Source: Prasinococcaceae sp. CCMP 1430 (Eukaryota > Plantae > Prasinodermophyta). Taken from it: a DNA stretch of 64,000 nucleotides. The notes beneath the pieces are model-generated. The model made no database searches. It saw only the letters and a list, made by a program, of their open reading frames with translations, and was not told the DNA's origin. Each line of letters opens with the position of its first letter. Positions within the stretch are counted from its first letter, which is position 1. Both the position numbers and the translations under genes were made by a program. The stretch spans positions 298,721 through 362,720 of the forward strand of contig RQSC01000011.1 in the NCBI GenBank assembly GCA_013416795.1. The letters run 5' to 3'. This document shows positions 5,030-64,000 of the stretch, one piece after another.

Positions 5030-6255
5030 CAGGCACATGCACCCGTACGCTGTGACCCAATAGTCACGCCCGTGCGTTCGCGCGCGCGTGTGAAGGGGGT
5101 GATGTGCACAGCAAGTTAGAGCGGGCCACCCCCGACACATTAGGGTGCCAAAAAACGCGGCGATTCTCGAGCCGCCCACGCGCGCTGCGATGCTCCCGTG
5201 CGGGATGGCACAGCCGAGCGGGCAAAGACGGGCGGAGCGCTCGCCAGATGACGCATGACGCTCTGGGCGCGCTCGCGGTGGCACTGCCGGAGCTCTGGCA
5301 GCACGCTCAAGGTGCTTTGCGCGCTCGCGCGCGCCCGCCGGCCCGCGCGCCAGTGCGGCCGCGCAAAAAATGGCAGCGCGCGCGCGTGGCCGAGCTCTTG
5401 CGGCTGCACAACGCAGATGGGTGCGGCGCGCCTGAAGGGCTGCGGCGCATGCAGGCGCTTTCCCCCCTTCCCCTCGTTTCTCCCCCCGCCCGCCCGCGCG
5501 CGTCCTCACCTCTGCGCCCGTCTTAGCGCGTCCTGCCGCGGCAGGGGTCACAGCGTCGGGGGATGTGCGGTGGGGGGAGGCCCGCGAGGCGCGCGGTGTG
5601 GCCCGCGCCGCCCAATCGGCGCGAAGTTGTAACATGCGCGCGCGCGCCCGCGCGCCGGCGGACCTTCTTGCCCGAAGGATTCGGCAACGAGGCACCCGCG
5701 CGCCGGCGCGAGCGCGCGCCCCCGGCGGCGCCGCGGATCGCGCTCACGGCCGCGTGATCTCTCCGATTTTTCTGGCGCCGAAAATGATTGAAAAGATCAT
5801 CATCGTGCGGCGCATGGCGGGCGTGTGCGAAATGCACGCCGGAATTCCGCGGATTTCACACGTGCGGACGAGGGTTCGTTCTGTGGGCGCATCGTCGACT
5901 CTTTGACGACCGCGGGCAGCTGCGACGCGGTTTGCACGAGGCACGGTTGCGAAGCGCTCCGAAGTGCTCTGTGGGGGACCACTAAGGCGCACTCATTGCG
6001 TGCGCGCACTGAGTGGCGCGGCGCCCCGTTTTGCCGGCGCGTGGCCCCGGCCGGGGGGGCGCGTATGCGCGTCTGGGCGCGCGGCGCGCGCNCACTCCGT
6101 GTGCGTCGCGGCGCGCTCTCGGCAACCGCCTCGCCGTCCTTGCCGCCCACCCCCTACCTCCGGTCGGTGCAGCGACGCGCCGGGGCTCACCGCGGGCGGC
6201 CGCGTCTCTCGGCGCGCGCGCCCCTCGGCACGCGCGTGCGTACCGCCGCGTCGCC

Positions 6256-8809: not shown

Positions 8810-10537
8810 ATGGGCGCGCTGCGCGACTTCGCCGTGTCGTGGGCGCGCGCGCGCCGCGACGACCTCGAGCGGCGCCTGCAGCAGCACGCCCACGACGCCG
8901 CACGCACGCGCGTGCCGTTCGGCGCGCCGAGGCTCGTCAAGGGATCACACAGGGTCGCGAAGATCATCTCCGCGCTCGCACCCGAGCACCACGCGCGCAA
9001 GACGACCGCCGCAGCGGCCGCGGTGACGGCGCGAGCGGTGGCGCAGAAGCGCCGCGCCGCCTCTGGGACCGCCTCGGGGGGCGCCGCGGCGGCTGCGAGC
9101 GGCGCTGGCCGCGGCGGCGCGGCGGACGCGGGGCCCGCGTTCGTAGCCTCGGGCGACGGGGAAAAAGGCGAGGACGAGCCGCTGTACGCGAGCCAGCTCG
9201 CGCGCTGGCTCCGCCCGCTGGTGATTGGCGCCGTGGGCTTCTCCGGCCGGGCGTGGCTCACCGTTTTCAACCGCTTCGAGGCACACGGCACCGAGCACCT
9301 CCTGAGGGCCCTGCACGAGCGACCCGCCGGGACTCCGCTCATGACGGTTAGCAATCACGTGGCTGCCCTGGACGACCCCTTCATCCCGTCGACGCTGGTG
9401 CCCGCAGAGCGGCTGCTCACCGCCGACCGGATGCGCTGGACGCTGTGCGCCGCCGAGAACTGCTTCCGTACCGACTTCACGCGCTGCTTCTTTGCGGCGG
9501 GCAAGGCCGTGCCCGTCGAGCGCGGCGCGGGCGCCGACCAGGCCGGCATGCGCGAGATGCGCGACCGCCTCGCGGACGGGGAGTGGGTGCACATCTTCCC
9601 GGAGGGGACTCGATCGCGGGACGGCGGCGCCACTCTCACGCGCGCCAAGCGCGGCGTGGGCTGGCTCGCGGACGCCGCCGAGCGCAAGGGCGGCGTGGCG
9701 CCGCTGATCGTGCCGTACGTGCACGACGGCATGCAGCACGTGCAACCGCGGCGTACAAAGGTGCCGCGCGTGGGCAACACGGTGAGGGTGCTCATGGGGG
9801 AGCCGATCGACGTGTCCGACCTATTCGAGGAGAGGAGGGAGAGGGAGCGAGCGGCCGCCAGGGCGAGCGAGGCGGCACGCGCAGGAATGAGTCGCGCCGG
9901 CACACAAAGGAGCGGCCTCGGCGAGGGTGGCGACGACGGCGCGACGGCGGCGGCCGCCGCACTGAGCGCTGAGGCGATGCGCGCGGCCGACCTCGCGCTG
10001 CAAGATGCCATCGCCACGCGCTGCGACGCGGCGATGCGCGTGCTGCACGAGCGGCTGCACTGTGGACTCGAGGCTGAGGCAGGGGCGTCGGCCTGGCGCA
10101 CGGCCGTGCCCGAGGGGGTATGGGAGCGCACACTGCCTGATCAGGCGGGGGCGGCCGCATGGGCGGGGGCGGCAGCCGCCGCGCCCGCGCGCACGCAGTC
10201 GCACGCGCAGCAGCGACGCCGCCTGGTGCAATGGCAGTGGCAGCAGGACATCAAACACCTCGTGCAGCGCCAGAGCATGCACCTGGACAACTACGCGGAG
10301 TCACCATGGACACACGCCCGCTCGCTGCTCGCCTGGGGAGCACCCACGCCGTTCGCGGCGACGGCGCTCTCAATGGGCGGGGCGCACGCGCGGCCGCGGC
10401 TGTCGCTCTGGCGGGCGCTCCTCGAGGAAGGGGTGCTGCCTGAGGGCGGCAGGACACTCGCGTCCCTGCTCGACGCGCCTGGGGCGACCGACGCGGGAGC
10501 CACCATCGCACTCGCACCGCCAAGCGCCGCCATGTAA
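8810..10537 (+). CDS. TAZ: Tafazzin-like lysophospholipid acyltransferase
   Basis: TVSNHVAALDDP (HX4D), RWTLCAAENCF, WVHIFPEG motifs. Confidence 0.9.
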   Translation: MGALRDFAVSWARARRDDLERRLQQHAHDAARTRVPFGAPRLVKGSHRVAKIISALAPEHHARKTTAAAAAVTARAVAQKRRAASGTASGGAAAAASGAGRGGAADAGPAFVASGDGEKGEDEPLYASQLARWLRPLVIGAVGFSGRAWLTVFNRFEAHGTEHLLRALHERPAGTPLMTVSNHVAALDDPFIPSTLVPAERLLTADRMRWTLCAAENCFRTDFTRCFFAAGKAVPVERGAGADQAGMREMRDRLADGEWVHIFPEGTRSRDGGATLTRAKRGVGWLADAAERKGGVAPLIVPYVHDGMQHVQPRRTKVPRVGNTVRVLMGEPIDVSDLFEERRERERAAARASEAARAGMSRAGTQRSGLGEGGDDGATAAAAALSAEAMRAADLALQDAIATRCDAAMRVLHERLHCGLEAEAGASAWRTAVPEGVWERTLPDQAGAAAWAGAAAAAPARTQSHAQQRRRLVQWQWQQDIKHLVQRQSMHLDNYAESPWTHARSLLAWGAPTPFAATALSMGGAHARPRLSLWRALLEEGVLPEGGRTLASLLDAPGATDAGATIALAPPSAAM

Positions 10538-17358: not shown

Positions 17359-17947
17359 NNNNNNNNNNNNNNNNNNNNNNNNNNNNNNNNNNNNNNNNNN
17401 NNNNNNNNNNNNNNNNNNNNNNNNNNNNNNNNNNNNNNNNNNNNNNNNNNNNNNNNNNNNNNNNNNNNNNNNNNNNNNNNNNNNNNNNNNNNNNNNNNNN
17501 NNNNNNNNNNNNNNNNNNNNNNNNNNNNNNNNNNNNNNNNNNNNNNNNNNNNNNNNNNNNNNNNNNNNNNNNNNNNNNNNNNNNNNNNNNNNNNNNNNNN
17601 NNNNNNNNNNNNNNNNNNNNNNNNNNNNNNNNNNNNNNNNNNNNNNNNNNNNNNNNNNNNNNNNNNNNNNNNNNNNNNNNNNNNNNNNNNNNNNNNNNNN
17701 NNNNNNNNNNNNNNNNNNNNNNNNNNNNNNNNNNNNNNNNNNNNNNNNNNNNNNNNNNNNNNNNNNNNNNNNNNNNNNNNNNNNNNNNNNNNNNNNNNNN
17801 NNNNNNNNNNNNNNNNNNNNNNNNNNNNNNNNNNNNNNNNNNNNNNNNNNNNNNNNNNNNNNNNNNNNNNNNNNNNNNNNNNNNNNNNNNNNNNNNNNNN
17901 NNNNNNNNNNNNNNNNNNNNNNNNNNNNNNNNNNNNNNNNNNNNNNN
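17359..17947. other. Assembly gap (N run)
   Basis: Run of N in sequence. Confidence 1.
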
Positions 17948-25625: not shown

Positions 25626-25746
25626 NNNNNNNNNNNNNNNNNNNNNNNNNNNNNNNNNNNNNNNNNNNNNNNNNNNNNNNNNNNNNNNNNNNNNNNNNNN
25701 NNNNNNNNNNNNNNNNNNNNNNNNNNNNNNNNNNNNNNNNNNNNNN
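25626..25746. other. Assembly gap (N run)
   Basis: Run of N in sequence. Confidence 1.
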
Positions 25747-28292: not shown

Positions 28293-28470
28293 NNNNNNNN
28301 NNNNNNNNNNNNNNNNNNNNNNNNNNNNNNNNNNNNNNNNNNNNNNNNNNNNNNNNNNNNNNNNNNNNNNNNNNNNNNNNNNNNNNNNNNNNNNNNNNNN
28401 NNNNNNNNNNNNNNNNNNNNNNNNNNNNNNNNNNNNNNNNNNNNNNNNNNNNNNNNNNNNNNNNNNNNNN
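28293..28470. other. Assembly gap (N run) holding the divergent starts of the DnaJ-ZnF and SET genes
   Basis: Run of N in sequence. Confidence 1.
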
Positions 28471-30612: not shown

Positions 30613-32961
30613 TCACTTGGGCGTGCACACGTTCTTCTTGAATGCGCAGAGCTTCTTGGCGTCGCCCTGCTTGCACTCCTTCTTGTTCTTGGCGGCCTTG
30701 CAGAGCTTCTTGATGGCCTTTTTGGAGAGCTCGGACTGGTCGGTCTTCTTCGACTCCTTCTTCTTGTTCTTGTTCTTCTTCTTCTTGCCGGTGGGCTCGT
30801 CGCCCTCCTCGGGAGGAGGCGACGGGGTGCCGGAGAGCTTGTCGGACTTGCCGGCCTTCTTCTTGTTCTTCTTCTTGTCCTTGCCGGTGGGCGACGACGC
30901 GCCTGGCAGAGTGATGTCGAGGGCTGGCGCTGTTGCGTCGTCGAACAGGCCCTCCGCATCTTCGGCGGACTGGGCGGACGTCGAGGACTCGCCGCCCTCG
31001 AACGCGCCCGGCACGTCCGTCTGGCCGTGGTCGTCACGACCCCAGCAGTAGATCGCGCCGTCGTCCCGGGCGACGCCGCACGTGTGAGCCGCTCCGGCGC
31101 TCACGGACGCCCACGCGCCCACGCCGCTCGGCACGTCCAGCTGGCCGTCGGCGTTGTGCCCCCAGCAGTGCATCGAGCCGTCGTCCTGGGCGACGCCGCA
31201 CGTGTGCCAGTCTCCTGCGCTCACTGAGGACCACGCGCCCGCGCCGCTCGGCGCGTCCGCCTCGCCGGCGGCGTTGCTTCCCCAGCAGTGAATCGCGCCG
31301 TCGGCCTGCGCGACGCCGCACGTGTGAAAGTATCCTGCGCTCACCGAGGACCACGCGCCCACCTCGCTCGGCACGTCCGCCTGGCCGTAGGAGCTCCGTC
31401 CCCAGCAGTGCAGCGCGCCGTCGGCCAGCGCGACGCCGCACGTGTGGAAGGTTCCGGCGCTCACGGAGGACCACGCGCTCACAGTGCTGGGCACGTCGCT
31501 CTGGCCGAAGAGGTTCCACCCCCAGCAGCGGAGCGCGCCGTCGGCCCGCGCGACGCCGCACGTGTGGGCCCCTCCGGCGCTCACGGAGGACCACGCGCGG
31601 ACGGCGCTCGGCACGTCCGCCTGGCCCGCGTAGTTGGACCCCCAGCACTGGAGCGCGCCGTCGGCCCGCGCGACGCCGCACGTGTGGGAGAGTCCGGCGC
31701 TCACGGAGGACCACGCGTTGTCGCGCCCCGCATCGTGCGGCACGTGCACGTAGCCGTCGCCCGGGGTCGTCGCGTCGAGCGGCAGCCGCACGCGCTCCGG
31801 CGTGCACACGCTCGCGGGCCGCGAGTGCCTTCGCGACGAGTCGTCCACAGCGAGGGGCGGCGGAGATTGGGGGTTGTTGGGCGGCGGGCTCGATGGCGAG
31901 CTCGAAGGAAGGCTCGGCGGAGGCGGGCTCTCTGGCGGAGCATTAGCCGGGACGGGGCTGGGCGACGGGCTCGACGGCGGGCTGGCCGCCGGCGGAGGAC
32001 TCGTCGGGCTCGCCACGTCAGATGTGCTCGGCACGTCCGTCTGGCCATTTGTGTTTCTCCCCCAGCAGTAGATCGCGCCGTCGGCCACGCCGCACGTGTG
32101 GTGGATTCCGGCGCTCACGGTGGACCACGCGCCCACGCCGCTGGGCACGTCCGTCTGGCCATAGTCGTTGGTGCCCCAGCAGAGCAACGTGCCGTTGGCC
32201 TGCAAGATGCCGCATGTGTGCCACCCTCCGGCGCTCACGGTGGACCACGCGCCCGCGCCGCTCGGCACGTCGGTCTGGTTCCAGACGTCCTGTCCCCAGC
32301 AGCGCAGCGCGCCGTCCGCCAGCGCGATGCCGCACGTGTGGTAGTTTCCGGCGCTCACGGAGGACCAAGCGCTCACGTCGCTCGGCACGTCCGACTGGTT
32401 GTAGTAGCTGTTGGATCCCCAGCATTGCAGCGCGGAGTCCGCCTGCGCGATGCCGCACGTGTGGTCGTATCCGAGGCTCGCGGAGGACCACGCAGTCACG
32501 TCGCTCGGCATGGCGGTCTGGCCCGCGTAGCTCAATCCCCAGCAGTGGAGCGCGCCGTCCGCCCGCGCGATGCCGCACGTGTGAGTCGCTCCGGCGCTCA
32601 CGGAGGACCACGCGCTCACGTTGCTGGGCACGTCCATCTGGCTGTCGACGTCGCGCCCCCAGCAGTGCATAGCGCCGTCGTCCCGCGCGACGCCGCACGT
32701 GTGCGCGTCTCCTGCGCTCACCGAGGACCACGCGCTCACGTTGCTCGGCACGTCCACTAGCGCGCCGAGGTAGTCTTCGTCGTACATCATGGCATTTTCG
32801 GACGGTGCTTCGCCTCCCCAACAGCGCAGCTCGCCGTCGGCGAGCGAGAGGGCGCACGTGGCCCTGTATCCGGCGCTCAGGGAGTACGATTCGCGGTGCG
32901 AGTCGGGAGCGGCGGCCGCACCGCGCGGTGCGAGCAGCGCCACCGCCGCCCATGCCGCGCT
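30613..32961 (-). CDS. Secreted RCC1/BLIP-II-like repeat protein, copy A: two repeat blocks, Ser/Pro linker, Lys-rich 4-Cys tail; no in-frame ATG before the signal-like segment
   Basis: Repeated WSSVSAGxxHTCG...DG.L.CWG.N..GQ.DVP unit; hydrophobic N-terminus AWAAVALLAPRGAAAA; tail LCKAAKNKKECKQGDAKKLCAFKKNVC; in-frame TAG at 32962-32964. Confidence 0.85.
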   Translation of the reverse strand, partial: SAAWAAVALLAPRGAAAAPDSHRESYSLSAGYRATCALSLADGELRCWGGEAPSENAMMYDEDYLGALVDVPSNVSAWSSVSAGDAHTCGVARDDGAMHCWGRDVDSQMDVPSNVSAWSSVSAGATHTCGIARADGALHCWGLSYAGQTAMPSDVTAWSSASLGYDHTCGIAQADSALQCWGSNSYYNQSDVPSDVSAWSSVSAGNYHTCGIALADGALRCWGQDVWNQTDVPSGAGAWSTVSAGGWHTCGILQANGTLLCWGTNDYGQTDVPSGVGAWSTVSAGIHHTCGVADGAIYCWGRNTNGQTDVPSTSDVASPTSPPPAASPPSSPSPSPVPANAPPESPPPPSLPSSSPSSPPPNNPQSPPPLAVDDSSRRHSRPASVCTPERVRLPLDATTPGDGYVHVPHDAGRDNAWSSVSAGLSHTCGVARADGALQCWGSNYAGQADVPSAVRAWSSVSAGGAHTCGVARADGALRCWGWNLFGQSDVPSTVSAWSSVSAGTFHTCGVALADGALHCWGRSSYGQADVPSEVGAWSSVSAGYFHTCGVAQADGAIHCWGSNAAGEADAPSGAGAWSSVSAGDWHTCGVAQDDGSMHCWGHNADGQLDVPSGVGAWASVSAGAAHTCGVARDDGAIYCWGRDDHGQTDVPGAFEGGESSTSAQSAEDAEGLFDDATAPALDITLPGASSPTGKDKKKNKKKAGKSDKLSGTPSPPPEEGDEPTGKKKKNKNKKKESKKTDQSELSKKAIKKLCKAAKNKKECKQGDAKKLCAFKKNVCTPK
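31761..31830. other. Complemented-but-not-reversed block 1 (may extend to ~31839)
   Basis: Base-by-base complement equals 60775-60844 of paralog B at 70/70 positions (hand alignment); restores SVSAGRSHTCGLAHADGELRCWG in place of RHSRPASVCTPERVRLPLDATTP. Confidence 0.97.
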
Positions 32962-36181: not shown

Positions 36182-38318
36182 ATGTCCATCTGGGAGGGCG
36201 TGGCGCCGCGTGCCGGGCTGCGCGAGCCGCTGCTCGCGCCGTCCGACGCGCACCGCCGCGCTGCTGGCGCTCGGTGCGCGCGAGGCCGCCTGGGTGGGCG
36301 CCGGCGTCGCGGCCCTGCTTGTGAGGCTGCCCTTCTCGCTGTCGATGCCGCTGTGGACCGCGCGTGCCGTGGACGAGCTCTATGGCTCCGACGAAGCGCG
36401 TGACATGGCGGCGGTGCGGCGCACGCTGCTGTACATGGCCGCCGCGGGCACCATCGATGCCGCGCTCGACTTTTGGTGTGTGTTCCTCTTCGGCTATGCG
36501 CAGCAGCGCCTCGTGCGGCAGCTGCGGCTCGACACGATGGCGGCCATCCTGCGGCAGGAGGTGGCGTATTTCGACGCAACGACCAGCGGTGAGCTGCTGA
36601 GCCGGCTGACGGCGGACTGCGAGGCGATGGCGGGCGACCTCACCAACGTGCTGCGCTCGGTGGTGGAGGCCGTTGTGCGCATCGGCTGGATTGCCGCGTA
36701 CATGCTCTACTCGTCGCCGCGGTTGGGCGGGGTTGCGTGCTGCGTGGTGCCGCTCACCGCCGCAGTGACGCGCTGCTACGCGCGCTGGCTGCATGCCAAC
36801 GCCACGCGCGTGCAGGCGGCGCTCGCGCGCGCCAACGCCTCCGCTGCCGAGGCGCTCGCCGGCCTGCGGACGGTGCTCGCCTTCGCCGCGGAGCGCGCCG
36901 AGCTCGCGCGCTTCGGCGCGGCCGTCGAGGAGCACCACTGGCTCAACGTGCGTCAGCTGGTCATAACGGGCGCGTACTACGCCGTGGCCGCCACCCTGCT
37001 CTCTAACACCGCCGTGGCGGTGGCGCTGCTAGCATACGGCGCCGTGCTTGTCGCGGAAGGCTCCATCTCCCCCGCCACGCTGCTGGGATTCATGCTGTAC
37101 CAGGCGCAGCTGCAGGAGTATTGGAACAACCTTCTGAACGCGCTCACCGGCTTGGTGCGCTCGTCGGGCGCGGGCGCCAAGGTTTTCGAGCTGCTCGGTA
37201 GGCAGCCCAAGTGCGTGCGCCTCGACGGGGGCGGGCTCGGCGACGCGTGTGGTTGGCTCGGCGACGGACTACGCGACAACACGGCGCCGGGGCGGACTGG
37301 TGGAGGCGGACGCGTGGGTGCTGACGCCGATGCGAGCACGCGCGCCAAGGCACGGGCGCATTTGCTGGGCGTCGACGTGCGCGACGTGTCCTTCGCGTAC
37401 CCCACGCGGCCATCCGTGCGCGTGCTCGACGGCGTGGGCCTGCGCGCGGAGGCCGGCGAGACGGTGGCGCTGTGCGGGGCGAGCGGCAGCGGCAAGAGCA
37501 CGCTTTTTCACATGCTTCAGGGGTTCTACGAGCCCGACGCGGGAGGCGTGTTCCTCTTGGGCGATGTGGTTGGTGGCGAGGCCGCTGTGTGTGCCATCCC
37601 ACACCGTGCTCTGCATCGGCTGGTGGCGCTGGTTGGCCAGGAGCCGGTGCTCTTTTCCGGGTCCGTGGAGTATAACATCCTGTACGGCGCGCTCGCCGAC
37701 CTGGTGGCGGAGCGTGAAGTAGCCGACGTCGCGCGCCCGCGCATGCGCGCTCGCGAGCGCACGCGAGCGGGGCTCGCGGGGGCGTTTGGGCTGCGCGGGC
37801 GCGTAGGCGCGGACTCGGATGTGAGGGCGAGCGGCTGGGAGGACCTCGTCGGCTCGCCCGCGGCCCTGGTAGACCTGCGCGCGCGCGCGCGCGCCGCTGC
37901 GGCCCTCGCGAACGCCGCGGGCTTCATCGATGCGCTGCCCGAGGGCTACGCTACGCAGGTGGGCGAGGGTGGCGCGGCGCTGAGCGGCGGGCAGAAGCAA
38001 CGTGTGGCCATCGCGCGGGCGCTGCTCCGCGACCCGGCGCTGCTGCTGCTCGACGAGGCCACCAGCGCACTCGACTCGGAGAGCGAGGCGGCCGTGCAGG
38101 AGGCGCTCGAGTCCGCTGCCGCCGGCCGCACCACTATGGTCATCGCGCACCGCCTGTCGACCATCCGCCGCGCGGACGCCATCCACGTGCTGCGCGCGGG
38201 CCGCGTCGTGCAGAGCGGCACGCACGCCGCGCTTCGCGCCGACGCGCGCGGCGCGTACGCGGCGCTCGCGCACGCGCAGGAGCTGCGCGACGACGCGGGG
38301 ACAGATGAGGACTCGTGA
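36182..38318 (+). CDS. ABCB (TAP-like) half-transporter; likely start ATG 36182 is out of frame with the main ORF
   Basis: TMD followed by Walker A GASGSGKS, Q-loop VGQEP, LSGGQKQRVAIARAL, LLLDEATSALD, IAHRLST. Confidence 0.92.
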
Positions 38319-48122: not shown

Positions 48123-49724
48123 CGCCGCCGCCGCGCGGCGCGGCGCCAGGGGGGCGGGGAGCGGGGGAAGGGAGAAGGTGGGTGCGCTCGCGCGAGTGCG
48201 GCGTGTGCCGCCACCGCGCCGCCACCCGCGCCCACGAGCCGGCGGCTGGGAGGGTTTGATCTCGGATAAGGCTCCAATTTCATCGATGCGAACACAACAA
48301 GAGGAGGTCAAATCACACATGGAAAAACGCTTCGAGACACATTTCAATATCGTCTTTGAAACCTCGAGGTTCACCGCCTGCACGGCGGTACGCTATTGAG
48401 TACACAGACCCTCTTCCCAAACGTGTACATATATGTATACCCTAAAACCAAACCTTAACTACCGGCGGGCGGCGGCCCGCTTTTGATCCGGCGCGTCGCG
48501 CGCGAGGGCGGCCGGAGATCTGCCCGAGGGAGATGCGGGCGGGATCTCGAACGGGGGCCGCCGCCAACCCAATACAACAACAACGGACGGACGCAGCCAA
48601 CGCCTCATCAACAACACGTGCACCCGCGCTCATCATCATCACAAGCCACACCTACTACTTCTGTGTGTACCTGCACGCGGTAACGGACGGCGGACGGCCG
48701 CGTGGTGGGAGTGTGCTGGCCCTCCCGCCCGCCGAGCGACCCGCCAGGCGGACCCACACCTGGATACGATCGACGAGTTCGTCGTCGCACGCGCGAAGCC
48801 AGCGAGCGAAGCTCGCGAGAGCCCGGCGCCCACGCTGCTGGGCGCAGGCACAGGCAGGGCCTGCTCCTCCGCTGCTGCTGCGACGCGCCCAGGCAGCCAG
48901 CAGGTCAAACCACACGCGTCGATCGATCGGGCGGCGGGGCGGAGAGACAGACAGACAGGCGCATCAGACGCGCGACGCCAGCCGGGTGAGCGTGTGCCAT
49001 GCAAGTGCTGTCTGTACGTCGCTGTCAGGGAGAACCGTGGACGGCGAGTGCGGAGCTTCCCCAGCGGACCGACCGAGCCTTCGATCCGATCCGTCCGTCG
49101 ACGCCGCACCGCATCGACGGCGCGCGTTTCATCGAAAGCCTGGAGGAGATGCGGAGACGTTGACTTCCGGTCACCGAACCCTAACCTGAGCGGACTGCTG
49201 GAGTCGATTTGAATATGTATAAATGCACTCATCAACAAACCCTTGAACCCTAAACAGGGCCGCGATCTGGGATCTCCCTGCGTTTTTTTTTTTTGCGCGT
49301 TTTTTTTTTTTGCGCGGGCGAAGGCAGAATCTCCGCCCGGCCGCGCGGCGGGCGCGTCCGACTTTTCGGAGATGGTCGTGCGCGAAGAATTTGTTCATAA
49401 GGTGTGCATAATTCGCGGAATGGCGCATGGAATTGGGGGCAATTATGCGAAACTCACGCAGGCGCGCGTGCGCGCAGCGGGCGCCACAGCGCGCGCGCGG
49501 GGCGCGGCTGGGGGGGGGCGTGTGTGTGGCTGCGCCCGCCGCCATGACGCGCCACGCGCGGCTCGAACGCGAGCGGCAAAGCGGCGCGCAGTGGCGGTGA
49601 TCCGCGGCGCGGCGCTGCGCCGCCGCCAGCCGCGGCCGCCGTTGCACCCCTCGCACAGCAGTCCGGCGCCAATGCAAAGGTTGAGGCGCCGGCGCCGGCG
49701 GAGGCGCAGAAGCGGGAGGAGGAG

Positions 49725-55911: not shown

Positions 55912-57487
<1,576 letters not shown>

Positions 57488-57749
57488 TGATGCGACGCGA
57501 CGCGGCGCCGCGATGGATGCGGCACGATGCGGCGCGACGTGACGTGCCACGCCGTGGCGCGGCGACGCGACAGGATGTGACGCTTCATGCTCGCGCCCCT
57601 CGCTCGACCGACCTGTAATTGTAATCGATATCGTACATGGAACAGCCGCCGGGCGTCGCGTGCGCGCGCGAGAGCACATCGAGTGCCCCTCGGAGCGAGT
57701 GCCCTCGGAGCGAGGCGCCCTCACGCCCTCGGAGCGGCAGCTCGATGCC

Positions 57750-58520
57750 TCAGAGCTCGCCGCGGCGCGCCTCGCCCGCCGGCGCTCTCGCGGCGGAGGT
57801 GCGCCTCCACTCGACGAACGCTTCCCAGCCCTCCGCGTGCTCCTCCCTCTCCCAGTCGGCGGCTTGCGCACCCGCCTCGACGAGCAGGCGCAGCGCCTCC
57901 CAGTTGCGCGTGCGCAGGGCGAGGTGCACCGGGGTCCAGCCCTTGCTGGAGTCCCTGTCCGCCAGGTTTACGTCCACGCCCGCCTCGATCATAATCGCGA
58001 GCGTCTCGACGTGTCCCCTCGTGCCCTTCCACAGCGCGCGGTGGAGCGGCGCGTACCCGTCCGGGTGGAACGACTGCCAGTCGAGCCCCCCCTCGATGGC
58101 AGCCCTCATGGCGGCAGGCCTGCCCTGGAAGGCCGCGCCGTGCGCGCACGTATACCCGTCCCGCTCGCCGGCCAGCGGGTCCGCGCCCGCGTCGAGGAGC
58201 GCCCCGAGCATGTCTGCGTGGCCGTACAGGCAGCTCGCCATCAGCGCGGTCTGGCCATCGCTCGGATCCCGGTAGTCAAGGTCGTCCTCGGGGCGGCGCT
58301 CATCGAGCAGCGCGAGGAGCTCCTCCGTCGCGCCCGCCCTGACGGCTCGGAGGATCCTCGGGCCCAGGGGGGGTGGTTTGCGCCTTGTGGTGCCCGAGGC
58401 CGCAAGACTGCCAGCGGGCAGGTCGGTGGCGAGGACGAGCAGCGCTCCCAGGAGCGCCGCTCGGGTGAGCGGGGCTGCCGCGCGGCCGCTGGGGAGCCGG
58501 GCCGGCGGCGCGCGCGTCAT
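57750..58520 (-). CDS. Secreted or membrane-anchored ankyrin-repeat protein
   Basis: Signal-like ALLGALLVLA; GQTALMASC, GYTCAHGAA, GYAPLHRAL, GWTPVHLAL ankyrin repeats. Confidence 0.88.
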   Translation of the reverse strand: MTRAPPARLPSGRAAAPLTRAALLGALLVLATDLPAGSLAASGTTRRKPPPLGPRILRAVRAGATEELLALLDERRPEDDLDYRDPSDGQTALMASCLYGHADMLGALLDAGADPLAGERDGYTCAHGAAFQGRPAAMRAAIEGGLDWQSFHPDGYAPLHRALWKGTRGHVETLAIMIEAGVDVNLADRDSSKGWTPVHLALRTRNWEALRLLVEAGAQAADWEREEHAEGWEAFVEWRRTSAARAPAGEARRGEL

Positions 58521-58825
58521 CCCCGGGCGGCCCTGCAATGCAGATGGGCGCGGTCCGGGGTTGGACAGGCACCGGAGGCGCCGGCGGAAGCTGCCTAGCG
58601 TCGCTGAAGTCGGCTGGTGCGCGCGCTGTGGGGGGCGGCAGGTGCTGCCCGGACTGGTGGCACCTGGGAGGCGCGGCGCGTGGCTGCGGGCGGCAGTTGG
58701 ATGTCGTGTCGCGTCGAGTTGTGATGACTGGGAAGAGAAGAAGATTGACTGAATTCGTGTCAAAATGCGTGAGGGCAGCACATGAGGCGCGTGCGTCGAT
58801 CGCCTCTCGGCGTCTTCCCTCGCTT

Positions 58826-58969
58826 TCACTTGGGCGCGCACGCGTTCTTCTTGAACGTGCAGAGCGTCTTGGCGTCGCCCTGCTTGCACTCCTTCTTGTT
58901 CTTGGCGGCCTTGCACAGCTTCCTGACGGCCTTTTTGGAGAGCTCGGACTCGTCGGTCTTCTTCGACTT
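58826..58969 (-). pseudogene. Orphan third copy of the Lys-rich 4-Cys tail of the RCC1-repeat genes
   Basis: KSKKTDESELSKKAVRKLCKAAKNKKECKQGDAKTLCTFKKNACAPK* with no RCC1 repeats upstream. Confidence 0.75.
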
Positions 58970-59599: not shown

Positions 59600-62161
59600 T
59601 CACCTGGGCCTGCACGCGTTGTTCTTGAATGTGCAGAGCTTCTTGGCGTCGCCCTGCTTGCACTCCTTCTTGTTCCTGGCGGCCTTGCACAGCTTCTTGA
59701 TGGCCTTTGTGGAGAGCTCGGACTCGTCGGTCTTCTTCGACTTCTCCTTCTTCTTGTTCTTCTTCTTCTTGCCGGTGGGCTCCTCGTCCTCTTCGGGAGG
59801 AGGCGACGGCGAGCCGGAGGGCTTGGACTTGCCGGCCAAGAAGAACAAGAAGAAGAACGAGAAAAAGAACAGGAACGGCCCGGGCGACGACGCGCCTGGC
59901 AGAGTGATGTCGAGGGCCGGCGCTGTTGCGTCGTCGAACAGGCCATCCGCATCTTCGGCGGACTGGGCGGACGTCGAGGACTCGCTGCCCTCGAACCGCG
60001 GGCCGTGCAGGCAGACCGGCACCAGCAGTGCTGGGGTCGTCTAGATCGCGCCGTCCTCCCGGGCGACGCCGCACGTGTGAGCCGCTCCGGCGCTCACGGA
60101 GGACCACGCACCCGCGCCGCTCGGCACGTCCGTCTGGCCGTCGGCGTCGCGCCCCCAACAGCGCATCGCGCCGTCGTCCCGGCTGACGCCGCACGTGTGC
60201 CAGTCCCCTGCGCTCACCGAGGACCACGCGCCCGCGCCGCTCGGCGCGTCCGCCTGGCCGTCGTCGTTGGACCCCCAGCAGTGAATCGCGCCGTCGGCCT
60301 GCGCGACGCCGCACGTGTGAAAGTATCCTGCGCTCACCGAGGACCACGCGCCCACGCCGCTCGGCACCTCCGTCTTGCCAAAGCCGCTGCGTCCCCAGCA
60401 GTGCAGCGCGCCGTCGGCCAGCGCGACGCCGCAGGTGTGGAAGGTTCCGGCGCTCACGGAGGACCAAGAGGACCACGCGCTCACAGTGCTGGGCACGTCG
60501 CTCTGGCCGAAGAGATTCCACCCCCAGCAGCGGAGCGCGCCGTCGGCCCGCGCGACGCCGCACGTGTGGGCCCCTCCGGCGCTCACGGAGGACCACGCGC
60601 GGACGGCGCTCGGCACGTCCGCCTGGCCCGCGTAGTTGGACCCCCAGCACTGGAGCGCGCCGTCGGCCCGCGCGACGCCGCACGTGTGGGAGAGTCCGGC
60701 GCTCACGGAGGACCAGGTGTTGTCGCGCCCCGCATCGTGCGGCACGTGAACGTAGCCGTCGTGGCCCCAGCAGAGGCCCCAGCAGCGCAGCTCGCCGTCG
60801 GCGTGCGCGAGGCCGCACGTGTGCGAGCGCCCGGCGCTCACGGAGTGCGGTGTGGCATCCACAACGAGGGGCGGCGGAGAGTTCGGGTTGTTGGGCGGCG
60901 GGTTTTGAAGAGGCGGGCTCGACGGAGGCGGGCTCGACGGAGGCGGGCTCGACGGCGGCGGGCTCGACGGAGGCGGGCTCGACGGCGGCGGGCTCGACGG
61001 CGGGCTGGCCGCCGGCGGAGGACTCGTCGGCGGGCTCGGCGGCAGCCAGCTCGGCACGTCCGTCTGGCCGTATTCGCCGTCGCCCCAGCAGTAAATCGCG
61101 CCGTCGTCCCGGGAGACGCCGCACGTGAAGTACGACCCGACGCTCACGGAGGACCACGCGCTCACGTTGCTCGGCACGTCCGTCTGGCCGTTGCCATTGA
61201 GTCCCCAGCAGAGCAGCGCGCCGTCGGCCTGCGCGATGCCGCACGTGTGCCATTCCCTGGTGCTTACCGAGGACCACGCACTCACAACGACCGGCACGTC
61301 CGTCTGGCCCTCGCCGTTAGATCCCCAGCAGTGCAGCGCGCCGTCGTCCAGCGCGATGCCGCACGTGTGGTACATTCCGGCGCTCACGGACGACCACGCG
61401 CTCACGTCACTCGGCACGTCCGCCTGGCCGTAGTCGTCGTAGTCAGAGGGGGATCCCCAGCAGCGCATCGCGCCGTCAGCCTGCGCGATGCCGCAGGTGT
61501 GGTACATTCCGGTGCTCACGGACGACCACGCGCCCACGCCGCTCGGCACGTCCGTCTGCCCGTCGGTGTTCGATCCCAAGCAGTGCAGCGCGCCGTCGGC
61601 CTGCGCGATGCCGCACGAGTGGAACAGAGATGGGCTCACGGAGGACCACGCGCCCACGCCGCTCGGCACGACCCCTTCGCCGTACATGTTATACCTCCAG
61701 CAGTACAGCGCAGAGTCCGCCCGCGCGATGCCGCACGTGGCGTAGGCGCCGGCGCTGACGGAGGACCACGCGCTCACATTGCTCGGCATCGGAATGTGCT
61801 CGTACTCGGAGACGTAGTAGTAGGTGGAGTCGGACGGTTCAATTTCTGGCCAGCAGCGCAACTCCCCGTCGGCGTGCGCGAGGCCACACGCGTGGAACGA
61901 TCCGACGCTCACGGAGTACGGCGGCTCTGAGTCCGAGTCCGAGGCGGCGGTTAGCTCTGAGTCCGAGTCCGAGGCGGCGGTTAGCTCTGAGCCCGAGTCC
62001 GAGGCGGCGGTTAGCTCTGAGTCCGAGTCCGAGGCGGCGGTTAGCTCTGAGTCCGAGTCCGAGGCGGCGGCGGCGCCGTTGAGGCCCGGTGCGAGCGCCG
62101 CCGCGCATGTCGCGAGGAGCAGCAGCTTGTTGGTTGTTGCGAGGGGGGGTGGAGGGGGCAT
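59600..62161 (-). CDS. Secreted RCC1/BLIP-II-like repeat protein, copy B; premature TAG at 60041-60043 is produced by complemented block 2
   Basis: MPPPPPLATTNKLLLLATCAAALA signal; SD repeats; RCC1-like units; SPPP linker; tail 59600-60022 is in the same frame as the main ORF. Confidence 0.88.
59997..60041. other. Complemented-but-not-reversed block 2
   Basis: Base-by-base complement of 31004-31048 in copy A at 45/45 positions, with matching colinear flanks; restores YCWGRDDHGQTDVPGA. Confidence 0.97.
61925..62070 (-). repeat. 30-nt tandem repeat (about 5 units) encoding ASDSDSELTA
   Basis: GAGTCCGAGTCCGAGGCGGCGGTTAGCTCT repeated on the + strand. Confidence 0.92.
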
Positions 62162-62564: not shown

Positions 62565-62840
62565 ATGGCGCCAGCGGGGGGCGCTGCAACCCCCGCCGCG
62601 ACCCCGAAAGCGATCGCGATCGCGACCACGCCAGCGCCCGCGACGACGCCCGCCCCCGGCCTGGTGGACGCTCGTGCGGCGCAGCCGGGGGCTCCTCGGC
62701 TCGCGATTGGGGCCGCCGTCGTGGAGCTCAAGCTGTGGCTACACCGCTTCGTCAACGTGGACCTCTTCGAGCAAGGATGGTACGCCTTCCGCATCTCGGC
62801 GAGCGCGGATGCAGCGAATCACGCCACCGGTGGCAGCGGC
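62565..62840 (+). pseudogene. FAM135-like (putative lipase family) N-terminal fragment truncated at the single N (62841)
   Basis: VELKLWLHRFVNVDLFEQGWYAFRIS matches the FAM135 N-terminal motif (F.N.DLFQ.G.Y.I); nothing recognisable of the gene follows the N. Confidence 0.7.
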
Positions 62841-62841
62841 N

Positions 62842-64000
62842 GGCGGGCTCGGAGGCGGGCTCGAGGGGGTCAGATCAAAGACGTACGCGCTGCCGCTATC
62901 GTCGCCGCCGTCGTTGTCCTCCCTATCAGCGCCCACCAGCGCGTAGTAGCCCGAGAGCGCCACGCTGACGCCGAAGTAGTCATCCGCCGCGGCGTCGCTT
63001 GCCACCAGCTTGGCGTGCTGCGACCACGACGTCCCCGACCGCAGGAAGACGTACGCGCTGCCGCTGTCGTCGCCGCCGACGGCGTCGTAAGGAACGCCCA
63101 CCAGCGCGTAGTCGCCCGAGAGTGCCACGCTTGTGCCGAAGTTGTCATACTCCGCGCCGTCGCTGGCCAACAGCTTGGCCTGCTGCGACCACGAGGTCCC
63201 CGACCGCACGAAGACGTACGCGCTGCCGCTGGCGGAGCCGTCAAAAGGGGCGCCAACCAGCGCGTAGTCGCTAGAGAGCGCCACGCTGGTGCCGAACTCG
63301 TCATTCGCCGCGCCATCGCTGGCCACCAGCTTGGCCTGCTGCAACCACGACGTCCCATTGCGAACGAACACGTACGCGCTGCCGCTGTTGGAGCCACTGT
63401 CGTCGTCGTGGGGAGCGCCCACCAGCGCGTAGTCGCCCGAGAGCGCCACGCTGACGCCAAAGCGGTCGTCGTACGTGCCGTCGTCGGCCATAAGCTTGGC
63501 CTGCTGCGACCACGACGTCCCCGAACGCACGAACACGTACGCGCTGACAGGGTTGCCGTCGTTCCACCAAGCGCCAACCAGCGCGTAGTCGCCCGAGAGC
63601 GCCACGCTGGCGCCGAAGTTGTCAGATCGGCGCCGCAGCGACCGTTGGTCGAACCGGACGACGCTGGTGCTGCAGGGGCTGGGCACGAACACGTACGCGC
63701 TGCCGCTCTCGTCGCCGCCGTCGTCGTCATATAGAGCGCCCACCAGCGCGTGGTCGCCCGAGAGCGCCACGCTCCAGCCGAAGGCGTCACCCGCCGCGGC
63801 GTCGCTGGCCACCAGCTTGGCCTGCTGGGACCACGACGTCCCATTGCGCACGAACACGTACGCGCTGCCGCTGTAGGGGCCGCCGTCCTCGTCTGAATAA
63901 GCGCCCACCAGCGCGTAGTCGCCCGAGAGCGCCACGCTGGTGCCAAAGTAGTCAGCGTCCGTGGCGTCGTTGGCCACCAGCTTGAACTGGTTCGGCGGTC
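62842..64000 (-). CDS. FG-GAP repeat (7-blade propeller-like) extracellular protein, partial at both ends
   Basis: Seven KL.A.D....D.FG.SVALSGDYALVGA...GSAYVF units, then SSPPPSP up to the N; frame is open to the window end. Confidence 0.9.
63627..63682. other. Complemented-but-not-reversed block 3
   Basis: PSPCSTSVVRFDQRSLRRR replaces the repeat consensus; its complement reads RSGTSWSQQAKLVASDAAA and nearly matches the neighbouring repeat at ~62987-63040. Confidence 0.95.

Follow-up and report, generated by a model that had tools for sequence, protein, structure and literature searches.

A premature stop in one of two paralogous RCC1-type genes of a prasinodermophyte alga lies at the edge of a 45-nt block written as complement without reversal

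Introduction

RCC1_2 (PF13540) propellers, as found in alpha-tubulin suppressor-like proteins, are built from blades of about 40 residues carrying the signature ...SAG..HTCG....DG...CWG.... Two RCC1-type genes described here (copies A and B) encode blades of this kind and have seven of them per propeller once the blocks discussed below are read correctly, as judged from motif counts. They differ from the known proteins in combining two propellers in one secreted-looking protein, with an SPPP-type linker and a Lys-rich tail containing four Cys. Their closest database relatives are only 39-47% identical.

Copy B, as written, is interrupted by a stop codon next to a short stretch that departs from its paralogue at every base. 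Micro-inversions and short template-switch mutations resemble this stretch in that they replace a short internal segment by sequence related through base pairing to local sequence, with clean boundaries and an unchanged length. They yield a reverse complement, however, while the stretch in copy B corresponds to the plain complement. Any product of inversion, template switching or gene conversion is a reverse complement, as the strands are antiparallel and extension proceeds 5' to 3'.

Strand-handling errors in sequence records are closer in kind: each base is exchanged for its Watson-Crick partner in the same order, while length, register and G+C content are kept, and the error can be detected only against a paralogue, a repeat unit or a relative. 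Such errors usually affect whole entries or primers, whereas here they take the form of internal patches of 43-70 nt, at least four within 64 kb, in repeat-family genes. A further likeness is to the gap-closing or mis-fill errors of short-read scaffolds, which are also local, flanked by colinear sequence and found mainly in paralogous or tandem-repeat genes; the DNA studied here has N gaps, a 102-nt segment in a KRR1 gene that looks wrongly filled and two abrupt junctions at members of the RCC1 family. Ordinary mis-fills introduce sequence of another locus or of the wrong length and never the exact complement of the right sequence, unlike the stretch in copy B.

Results

Gene content and irregularities of the window

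The window, that is, the whole stretch of 64,000 nt that was analyzed, has a G+C content of about 70% and encodes eukaryotic proteins in long uninterrupted open reading frames (ORFs). These include a condensin Cnd1 subunit, a CLC channel with CBS domains, an ABCB-type transporter, KRR1, and ankyrin, EF-hand and FG-GAP repeat proteins. No Rfam RNA families were detected in the window. The coordinates of the RCC1 copies, the FG-GAP repeat gene and the blocks discussed below are collected in Table 1. The published genome of Prasinoderma coloniale has a G+C content of 69.8%, and its assembly is described as 22 PacBio chromosomes (PMC7455551).

The KRR1 ORF of the window is 100% identical to the P. 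coloniale EukProt protein PRCOL_00006993-RA except for an upstream exon and one anomalous segment. Exon 1 of KRR1 lies upstream of the long ORF, indicating that the genome has introns. A Logan contig of run SRR29950796 matches the window at 57328-58896 with 99.94% identity over 1569 nt and contains no mirror block there. The identity of Tara Oceans contigs to the window is about 98% when indels are disregarded (94% in blastn with gaps counted). Together with the G+C content, these matches assign the window to P. coloniale or to a strain nearly identical with it. Exact-product look-ups with the annotated KRR1, its ORF part, the window KRR1 ORF and the EF-hand neighbor found none of these on record. 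The same look-up with the ankyrin neighbor returned a contig, which ends in a repeat before reaching copy B.

Several irregularities were observed apart from the RCC1 genes. Runs of N occupy positions 455-604, 17359-17947, 25626-25746 and 28293-28470, and single Ns stand at 6092, 8683 and 62841; such runs and isolated Ns are typical of a short-read scaffold or of masking. In the KRR1 tail, 102 nt on the plus strand (57224-57325) encode 34 residues, and nothing related to this segment occurs in the rest of the window, whatever the orientation. A Pfam search with the 34 residues gave no match; we see in them a likeness to a PdxT/SNO glutaminase N-terminus. In P0361, the annotated KRR1 of P. coloniale, and in a Tara contig (L001), a 36-nt version, AAAAASGRVAAG, takes its place, and the same-strain Logan contig (L005) starts exactly at this segment, its first 3 nt agreeing with the shorter version and not with the window. 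Relative to all solved ABCB structures, the nucleotide-binding domain of the ABC transporter has about 68 additional residues of low complexity (37692-37895), inserted between its NILYG motif and helical subdomain; the insert may be specific to the lineage, a retained intron or a mis-filled stretch. Finally, the intergenic positions 49280-49314 form a perfect 35-nt mirror repeat (T13-GCGCG-T14) within GC-rich DNA.

Table 1. Positions in the window of the two RCC1 copies, the FG-GAP repeat gene, the premature stop and the complement-only (mirror) blocks
Feature	Position	Strand	Remarks
RCC1 copy A	30613..32959	-	RCC1_2, 7.4e-78; ATG and signal peptide absent from the window
Normal counterpart of block 2, copy A	31004..31048	-	encodes YCWGRDDHGQTDVPGA
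Mirror block 1	31761..31830	.	70 nt; copy A, first blade of the C-terminal propeller; copy B normal at 60775-60844
RCC1 copy B	59600..62161	-	RCC1_2, 2.3e-70
Mirror block 3	59838..59880 (or 59881)	.	43-44 nt; copy B, Lys-rich tail
Mirror block 2	59997..60041	.	45 nt; expected sequence complemented in the same direction; copy B, last RCC1 blade
TAG stop, probably artefactual	60041..60043	-	T and A (60043, 60042) from the normal flank; G (60041) is the last block base
FG-GAP repeat gene	62739-63977 and beyond	-	holds block 4
Mirror block 4	~63625..63681	.	~54-57 nt; boundaries uncertain by a few bases; one FG-GAP repeat unit

Organization of the RCC1 copies

Copies A and B have a common architecture. 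From the N-terminus, copy B consists of a signal-peptide-like start, SDSDSELTAA repeats, seven RCC1 blades, a Pro/Ser linker, seven further blades, an acidic stretch and the Lys-rich four-Cys tail. The last blade of its C-terminal propeller is the one disrupted by block 2. A signal-peptide-like start is present in copy B and, for copy A, in the counterpart encoded on a Tara contig (L004; protein P0256). Both copies score far above the Pfam cut-off of 22 bits for RCC1_2 (PF13540), copy A with 255 bits over 11 stretches and copy B with 231 bits over nine. The number of blades with a CWG-type motif is 7 + 6 in both copies as written and rises to 7 + 7 when the blocks are complemented. No Pfam match was obtained for the Lys-rich four-Cys tail.

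The N-terminus of copy B holds five near-perfect 30-nt repeats encoding SDSDSELTAA (61924-62070), and the linker between the propellers (60912-61053) is an SPPP-type 15-nt repeat that recalls the hydroxyproline-rich wall proteins of algae. A third Lys/Cys tail of the family ('C') is located at 58808-58969, where only its last ~54 codons are left, cut at 58969/58970. On the Tara contig L001 this tail continues upstream as a normal gene end adjoining the ankyrin gene. Between the cut tail and the tail of copy B lie some 630 nt of unrelated sequence. At the other copy, the identity of A to the Tara contig L004 (98.4% over 728 nt) ends abruptly at 32959, and the L004 protein (P0256) begins with MSSARARATASAAW...; between 32959 and the ATG of the divergent EF-hand gene (33067) there are only about 108 nt, which are unrelated and contain a 30-mer unusually rich in A+T. 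The 32959/32960 junction may be a misjoin or a strain rearrangement.

Block 2 is the same-direction complement of copy A

A base-by-base comparison of block 2 with its counterpart in copy A confirmed the complement relation proposed in an earlier sequence-only reading, including the colinear flanks. All 45 bases are the same-direction complement of copy A (45/45), in register and with no indel. The bases bordering the block are the same in both copies (31003/59996 and 31049/60042), and the flanks are colinear at the single offset of 28993, for about 115 nt to one side of the block and for about 420 nt to the opposite side, and differ by scattered substitutions only. Read directly, the block agrees with the copy A segment at none of the 45 positions; as reverse complement it agrees at 15 and as plain reversal at 16. 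It matches its own reverse at 15/45 and is thus without mirror symmetry.

Given the base composition of the window, about 1e-15 complement matches of 45/45 are expected anywhere in it. A k-mer census of the window covered direct, complement-only, reverse-only and reverse-complement matches. Only three complement-only exact matches of at least 26 nt were found (70, 45 and 32 nt), all of them part of mirror blocks, and the window contains no donor for block 2, direct or reverse-complement, with up to three mismatches.

These figures bear on the reading that the stop is genuine and that an inversion, a template switch or a cluster of substitutions has made copy B a pseudogene, or a truncated gene followed by an orphan tail. 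An in-frame TAG is indeed present as written, and A and B are young paralogues, one of which could be decaying. The ratio pN/pS between them is near 1 (0.077 versus 0.093), which is uninformative and gives no argument for strong constraint. An inversion or a template switch would, however, give the reverse complement, to which the block conforms at one third of its positions only, and the block lacks mirror symmetry. Forty-five adjacent substitutions, all complementary and none in the flanks, would have a probability of about 1e-24. We regard a genuine stop as very unlikely, and the reading frame and the natural relative described below argue in the same direction.

Block 2 could alternatively be a real functional element, such as a tiny intron or a regulatory insert, that resembles the complement of the paralogue by chance. 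Its boundaries are discrete, and the genome does have introns, as seen for KRR1. The coding strand shows no GT...AG ends, though, and excision of the block would cost a conserved blade 15 codons. In length and register the block corresponds exactly to the piece of blade that it replaces (expected YCWGRDDHGQTDVP), and the Rfam search of the window gave no match to an RNA element. This reading has a negligible probability in our view.

The stop and the reading frame of copy B

Translation of both copies bears out a further proposal of the sequence-only reading, namely that a Tyr codon (TAC) is turned into TAG and that this separates the Lys/Cys tail from the body of the protein. Across the site, copy A is translated as ...DDGAIYCWGRDDHGQTDVPGAFEGGESS..., while copy B reads ...EDGAI, the stop and then TTPALLVPVCLHGPRFEGSESS..., after which the same frame remains open to the stop at 59600. 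As written, copy B therefore comprises 706 codons, a stop and 146 codons in the same frame. Complementing 59997-60041 in silico restores YCWGRDDHGQTDVPGAFEG and one ORF from 62161 to 59600 with 853 codons and no internal stop; the same ORF boundaries had been given in the sequence-only reading.

The 146-codon tail behind the TAG, whose open frame speaks against a genuine stop, shows no decay and is close to copy A and to the environmental relative described below, except in block 3. Copy B is the sole place in the window where a single stop cuts a frame whose third-position G+C is high to either side. A second candidate for a frame broken by a stop, at 9357, was rejected because it proved to run antisense to a gene on the plus strand.

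Independent predictors of the expected sequence

The other blades of copy B predict the sequence of block 2 without recourse to copy A. Tandem Repeats Finder places the start of a 120-nt array at 60047, just past the block. The complemented block agrees, with no shift, with the blades at +120, +240 and +360 nt in 38/45, 35/45 and 33/45 positions, respectively; the block as written does so in only 2/45, 3/45 and 4/45.

A second predictor comes from the environment. A search with the C-terminus of copy A retrieved a protein of 180 residues (P0244) encoded on a 1011-nt contig (L003) of the ENA assembly ERZ842040. L003 reads ...AREDGAIYCWGRDDHGQTDVPGAFEG... without interruption across the site of block 2, and the protein spans it as ...AREDGAIYCWGRDDHGQTDVPGAFEGGESSTSAQ... 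(with YCWGRDDHGQTDVPGAFEG and AREDGAIYCWGRDDHGQTDVPGAFEGGESS at the site). In a four-way DNA alignment, the 45 nt of L003 are identical to copy A and to the complement of copy B (45/45). At the position of the TAG of copy B, both copy A and L003 have TAC (Tyr). L003, the only independent sequence that crosses the site, thus lends the stop no support, which weighs further against its being genuine. With an identity of about 95%, L003 combines A-like and B-like positions in a mosaic; we regard it as belonging to the family in a related population rather than as a strict orthologue of copy B.

Beyond P0244 and P0256, word-indexed protein searches with the body of copy B and the C-terminus of copy A yielded only distant RCC1 proteins with at most 56% identity. 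An exhaustive search of representatives with the last 230 residues of copy A was dominated by giant multi-repeat RCC1 proteins, and the tail of the family was not found among them.

Further mirror blocks in the window

Block 2 is not isolated. The window contains at least four complement-only blocks (70, 45, 43-44 and about 55 nt), and each of the four regains a canonical motif when complemented by script. In addition to block 2, copy A carries block 1, which corresponds to the complement of copy B at 70/70 positions. The two copies thus each have a block where the other is normal, as the sequence-only reading had stated. Block 1 is translated as RHSRPASVCTPERVRLPLDATTP as written and as SVSAGRSHTCGLAHADGELRCWG once complemented.

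Block 3 was absent from the earlier observations. It gives GPFLFFFSFFFLFFL as written and (A/P)GKDKKKSKKKNKKK once complemented. The complemented block contains bases specific to copy B, including an extra KKKS, which agree with L003 rather than with copy A. This indicates that the operation acted in place on the sequence of copy B and did not involve copying from A.

Block 4 lies outside the RCC1 family. It encodes PCSTSVVRFDQRSLRRR as written, whereas its complement encodes GTSWSQQAKLVASDAAA, like the sister units. Compared in register with five sister FG-GAP units, the complement matches at 32-36 of 41 positions and the written block at 20-21 of 41. Block 4 makes no stop and would therefore escape notice in annotation. 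Two of the three blocks besides block 2 produce no stop, and the existence of these three, most of them silent in this respect, is a further point against a genuine stop in copy B.

The blocks appear to be concentrated in repeat-family genes, with the rate estimated where blocks are visible at all. The 3.07 kb that can be compared with contigs of the same species contain no mirror block, and three long unique ORFs (9.1 kb) contain no stop, where 37% of simulated blocks would generate one. At the block rate of the repeat genes, the joint probability of both absences is about 0.015. A codon-usage log-likelihood scan for blocks in unique genes, which set normal against complemented codons, was tried and discarded as underpowered: at about 0.4 bit per codon it missed the 70-nt block and flagged only the one in the FG-GAP gene.

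Discussion

We consider block 2 to be a non-biological error of the sequence record, with a probability of roughly 0.93 as judged from the comparisons above. A complement without reversal is not producible by any known DNA process, so that the stop is to be regarded as a record error and the gene as almost certainly intact. The polarity of DNA synthesis likewise excludes a plain complement as a biological product. For the written bases to be physically present, Prasinoderma would need a parallel-polarity copying of short stretches that acts repeatedly and prefers repeat-family genes, which seems to us exceedingly unlikely.

In the reading that we prefer, a short stretch of the true copy B sequence would have been written as its complement without reversal or, equivalently, a segment of a minus-strand read would have been reversed but not complemented. 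Such an error would change every base of the block while keeping length, register and G+C content, so that the last propeller blade would be lost on paper and a TAG would arise at the edge of the block. The same operation would have hit at least three other sites of the window, all in repeat-family genes. This recurrence suggests a fault of strand handling during the patching or filling of repeat regions, as we infer, or a later handling of the sequence. Badly patched repeat regions of a draft would fit the N runs, the 102-nt segment of KRR1, the loss of the start of copy A and the cut of the 'C' tail; later mishandling would fit them equally well. We know of no documented bug of an assembler or gap-closer that writes complement-only patches, and a literature phrase search on complement-without-reversal errors or patches returned nothing relevant.

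The later origin deserves separate mention, as it would still make block 2 an artefact but would leave the deposited genome normal. A script error, a deliberate perturbation or a spike-in would then have put the blocks into this copy of the sequence during its handling, once the assembly was complete. The four N runs and three single Ns of the window stand against the 22 PacBio chromosomes described for P. coloniale, and the 102-nt segment departs from the annotated KRR1 of that species and from the first bases of the Logan contig. The blocks are also reciprocal in the two paralogues, so that each is the control for the other. In addition, exact scans of the JGI metagenome and GTDB genome contigs, collections that are not expected to hold the alga, gave no match either to the written block or to its flanks with 45 free bases between them. 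On the other side, single Ns and N runs of variable length are typical of an ordinary short-read scaffold, and the window may come from a different draft assembly. The enrichment in repeat genes fits repeat-driven assembly trouble equally well, and the blocks are not directly tied to any later handling. We hold a post-assembly origin to be possible, but only tentatively so.

With either origin of the record error, the practical consequences lie in annotation and quality control. Complement-only patches keep length, G+C and third-position G+C and are therefore missed by ordinary checks. With four blocks in 64 kb, the source record merits a systematic screen, and the finding should be taken as a flag for annotation and quality control.

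The biological weight of the finding is small, since the gene is very probably intact and no new mechanism is involved. In the organism, copy B most likely is an intact 853-residue secreted protein, as predicted from the restored frame, whose two RCC1-like propellers have seven blades each and whose tail is rich in Lys and Cys; it is an ordinary algal repeat protein and neither a toxin nor an effector. The earlier suggestion that the gene is probably intact and prone to be mis-annotated as truncated finds support in the blade array, the environmental relative, the failure of the reverse complement and the restored blade. As written, copy B would be annotated as a truncated protein of 706 residues with an orphan tail, one blade would be garbled in each of copy A and the FG-GAP gene, and analyses of pseudogenization or selection in the family of the RCC1 copies would be misled.
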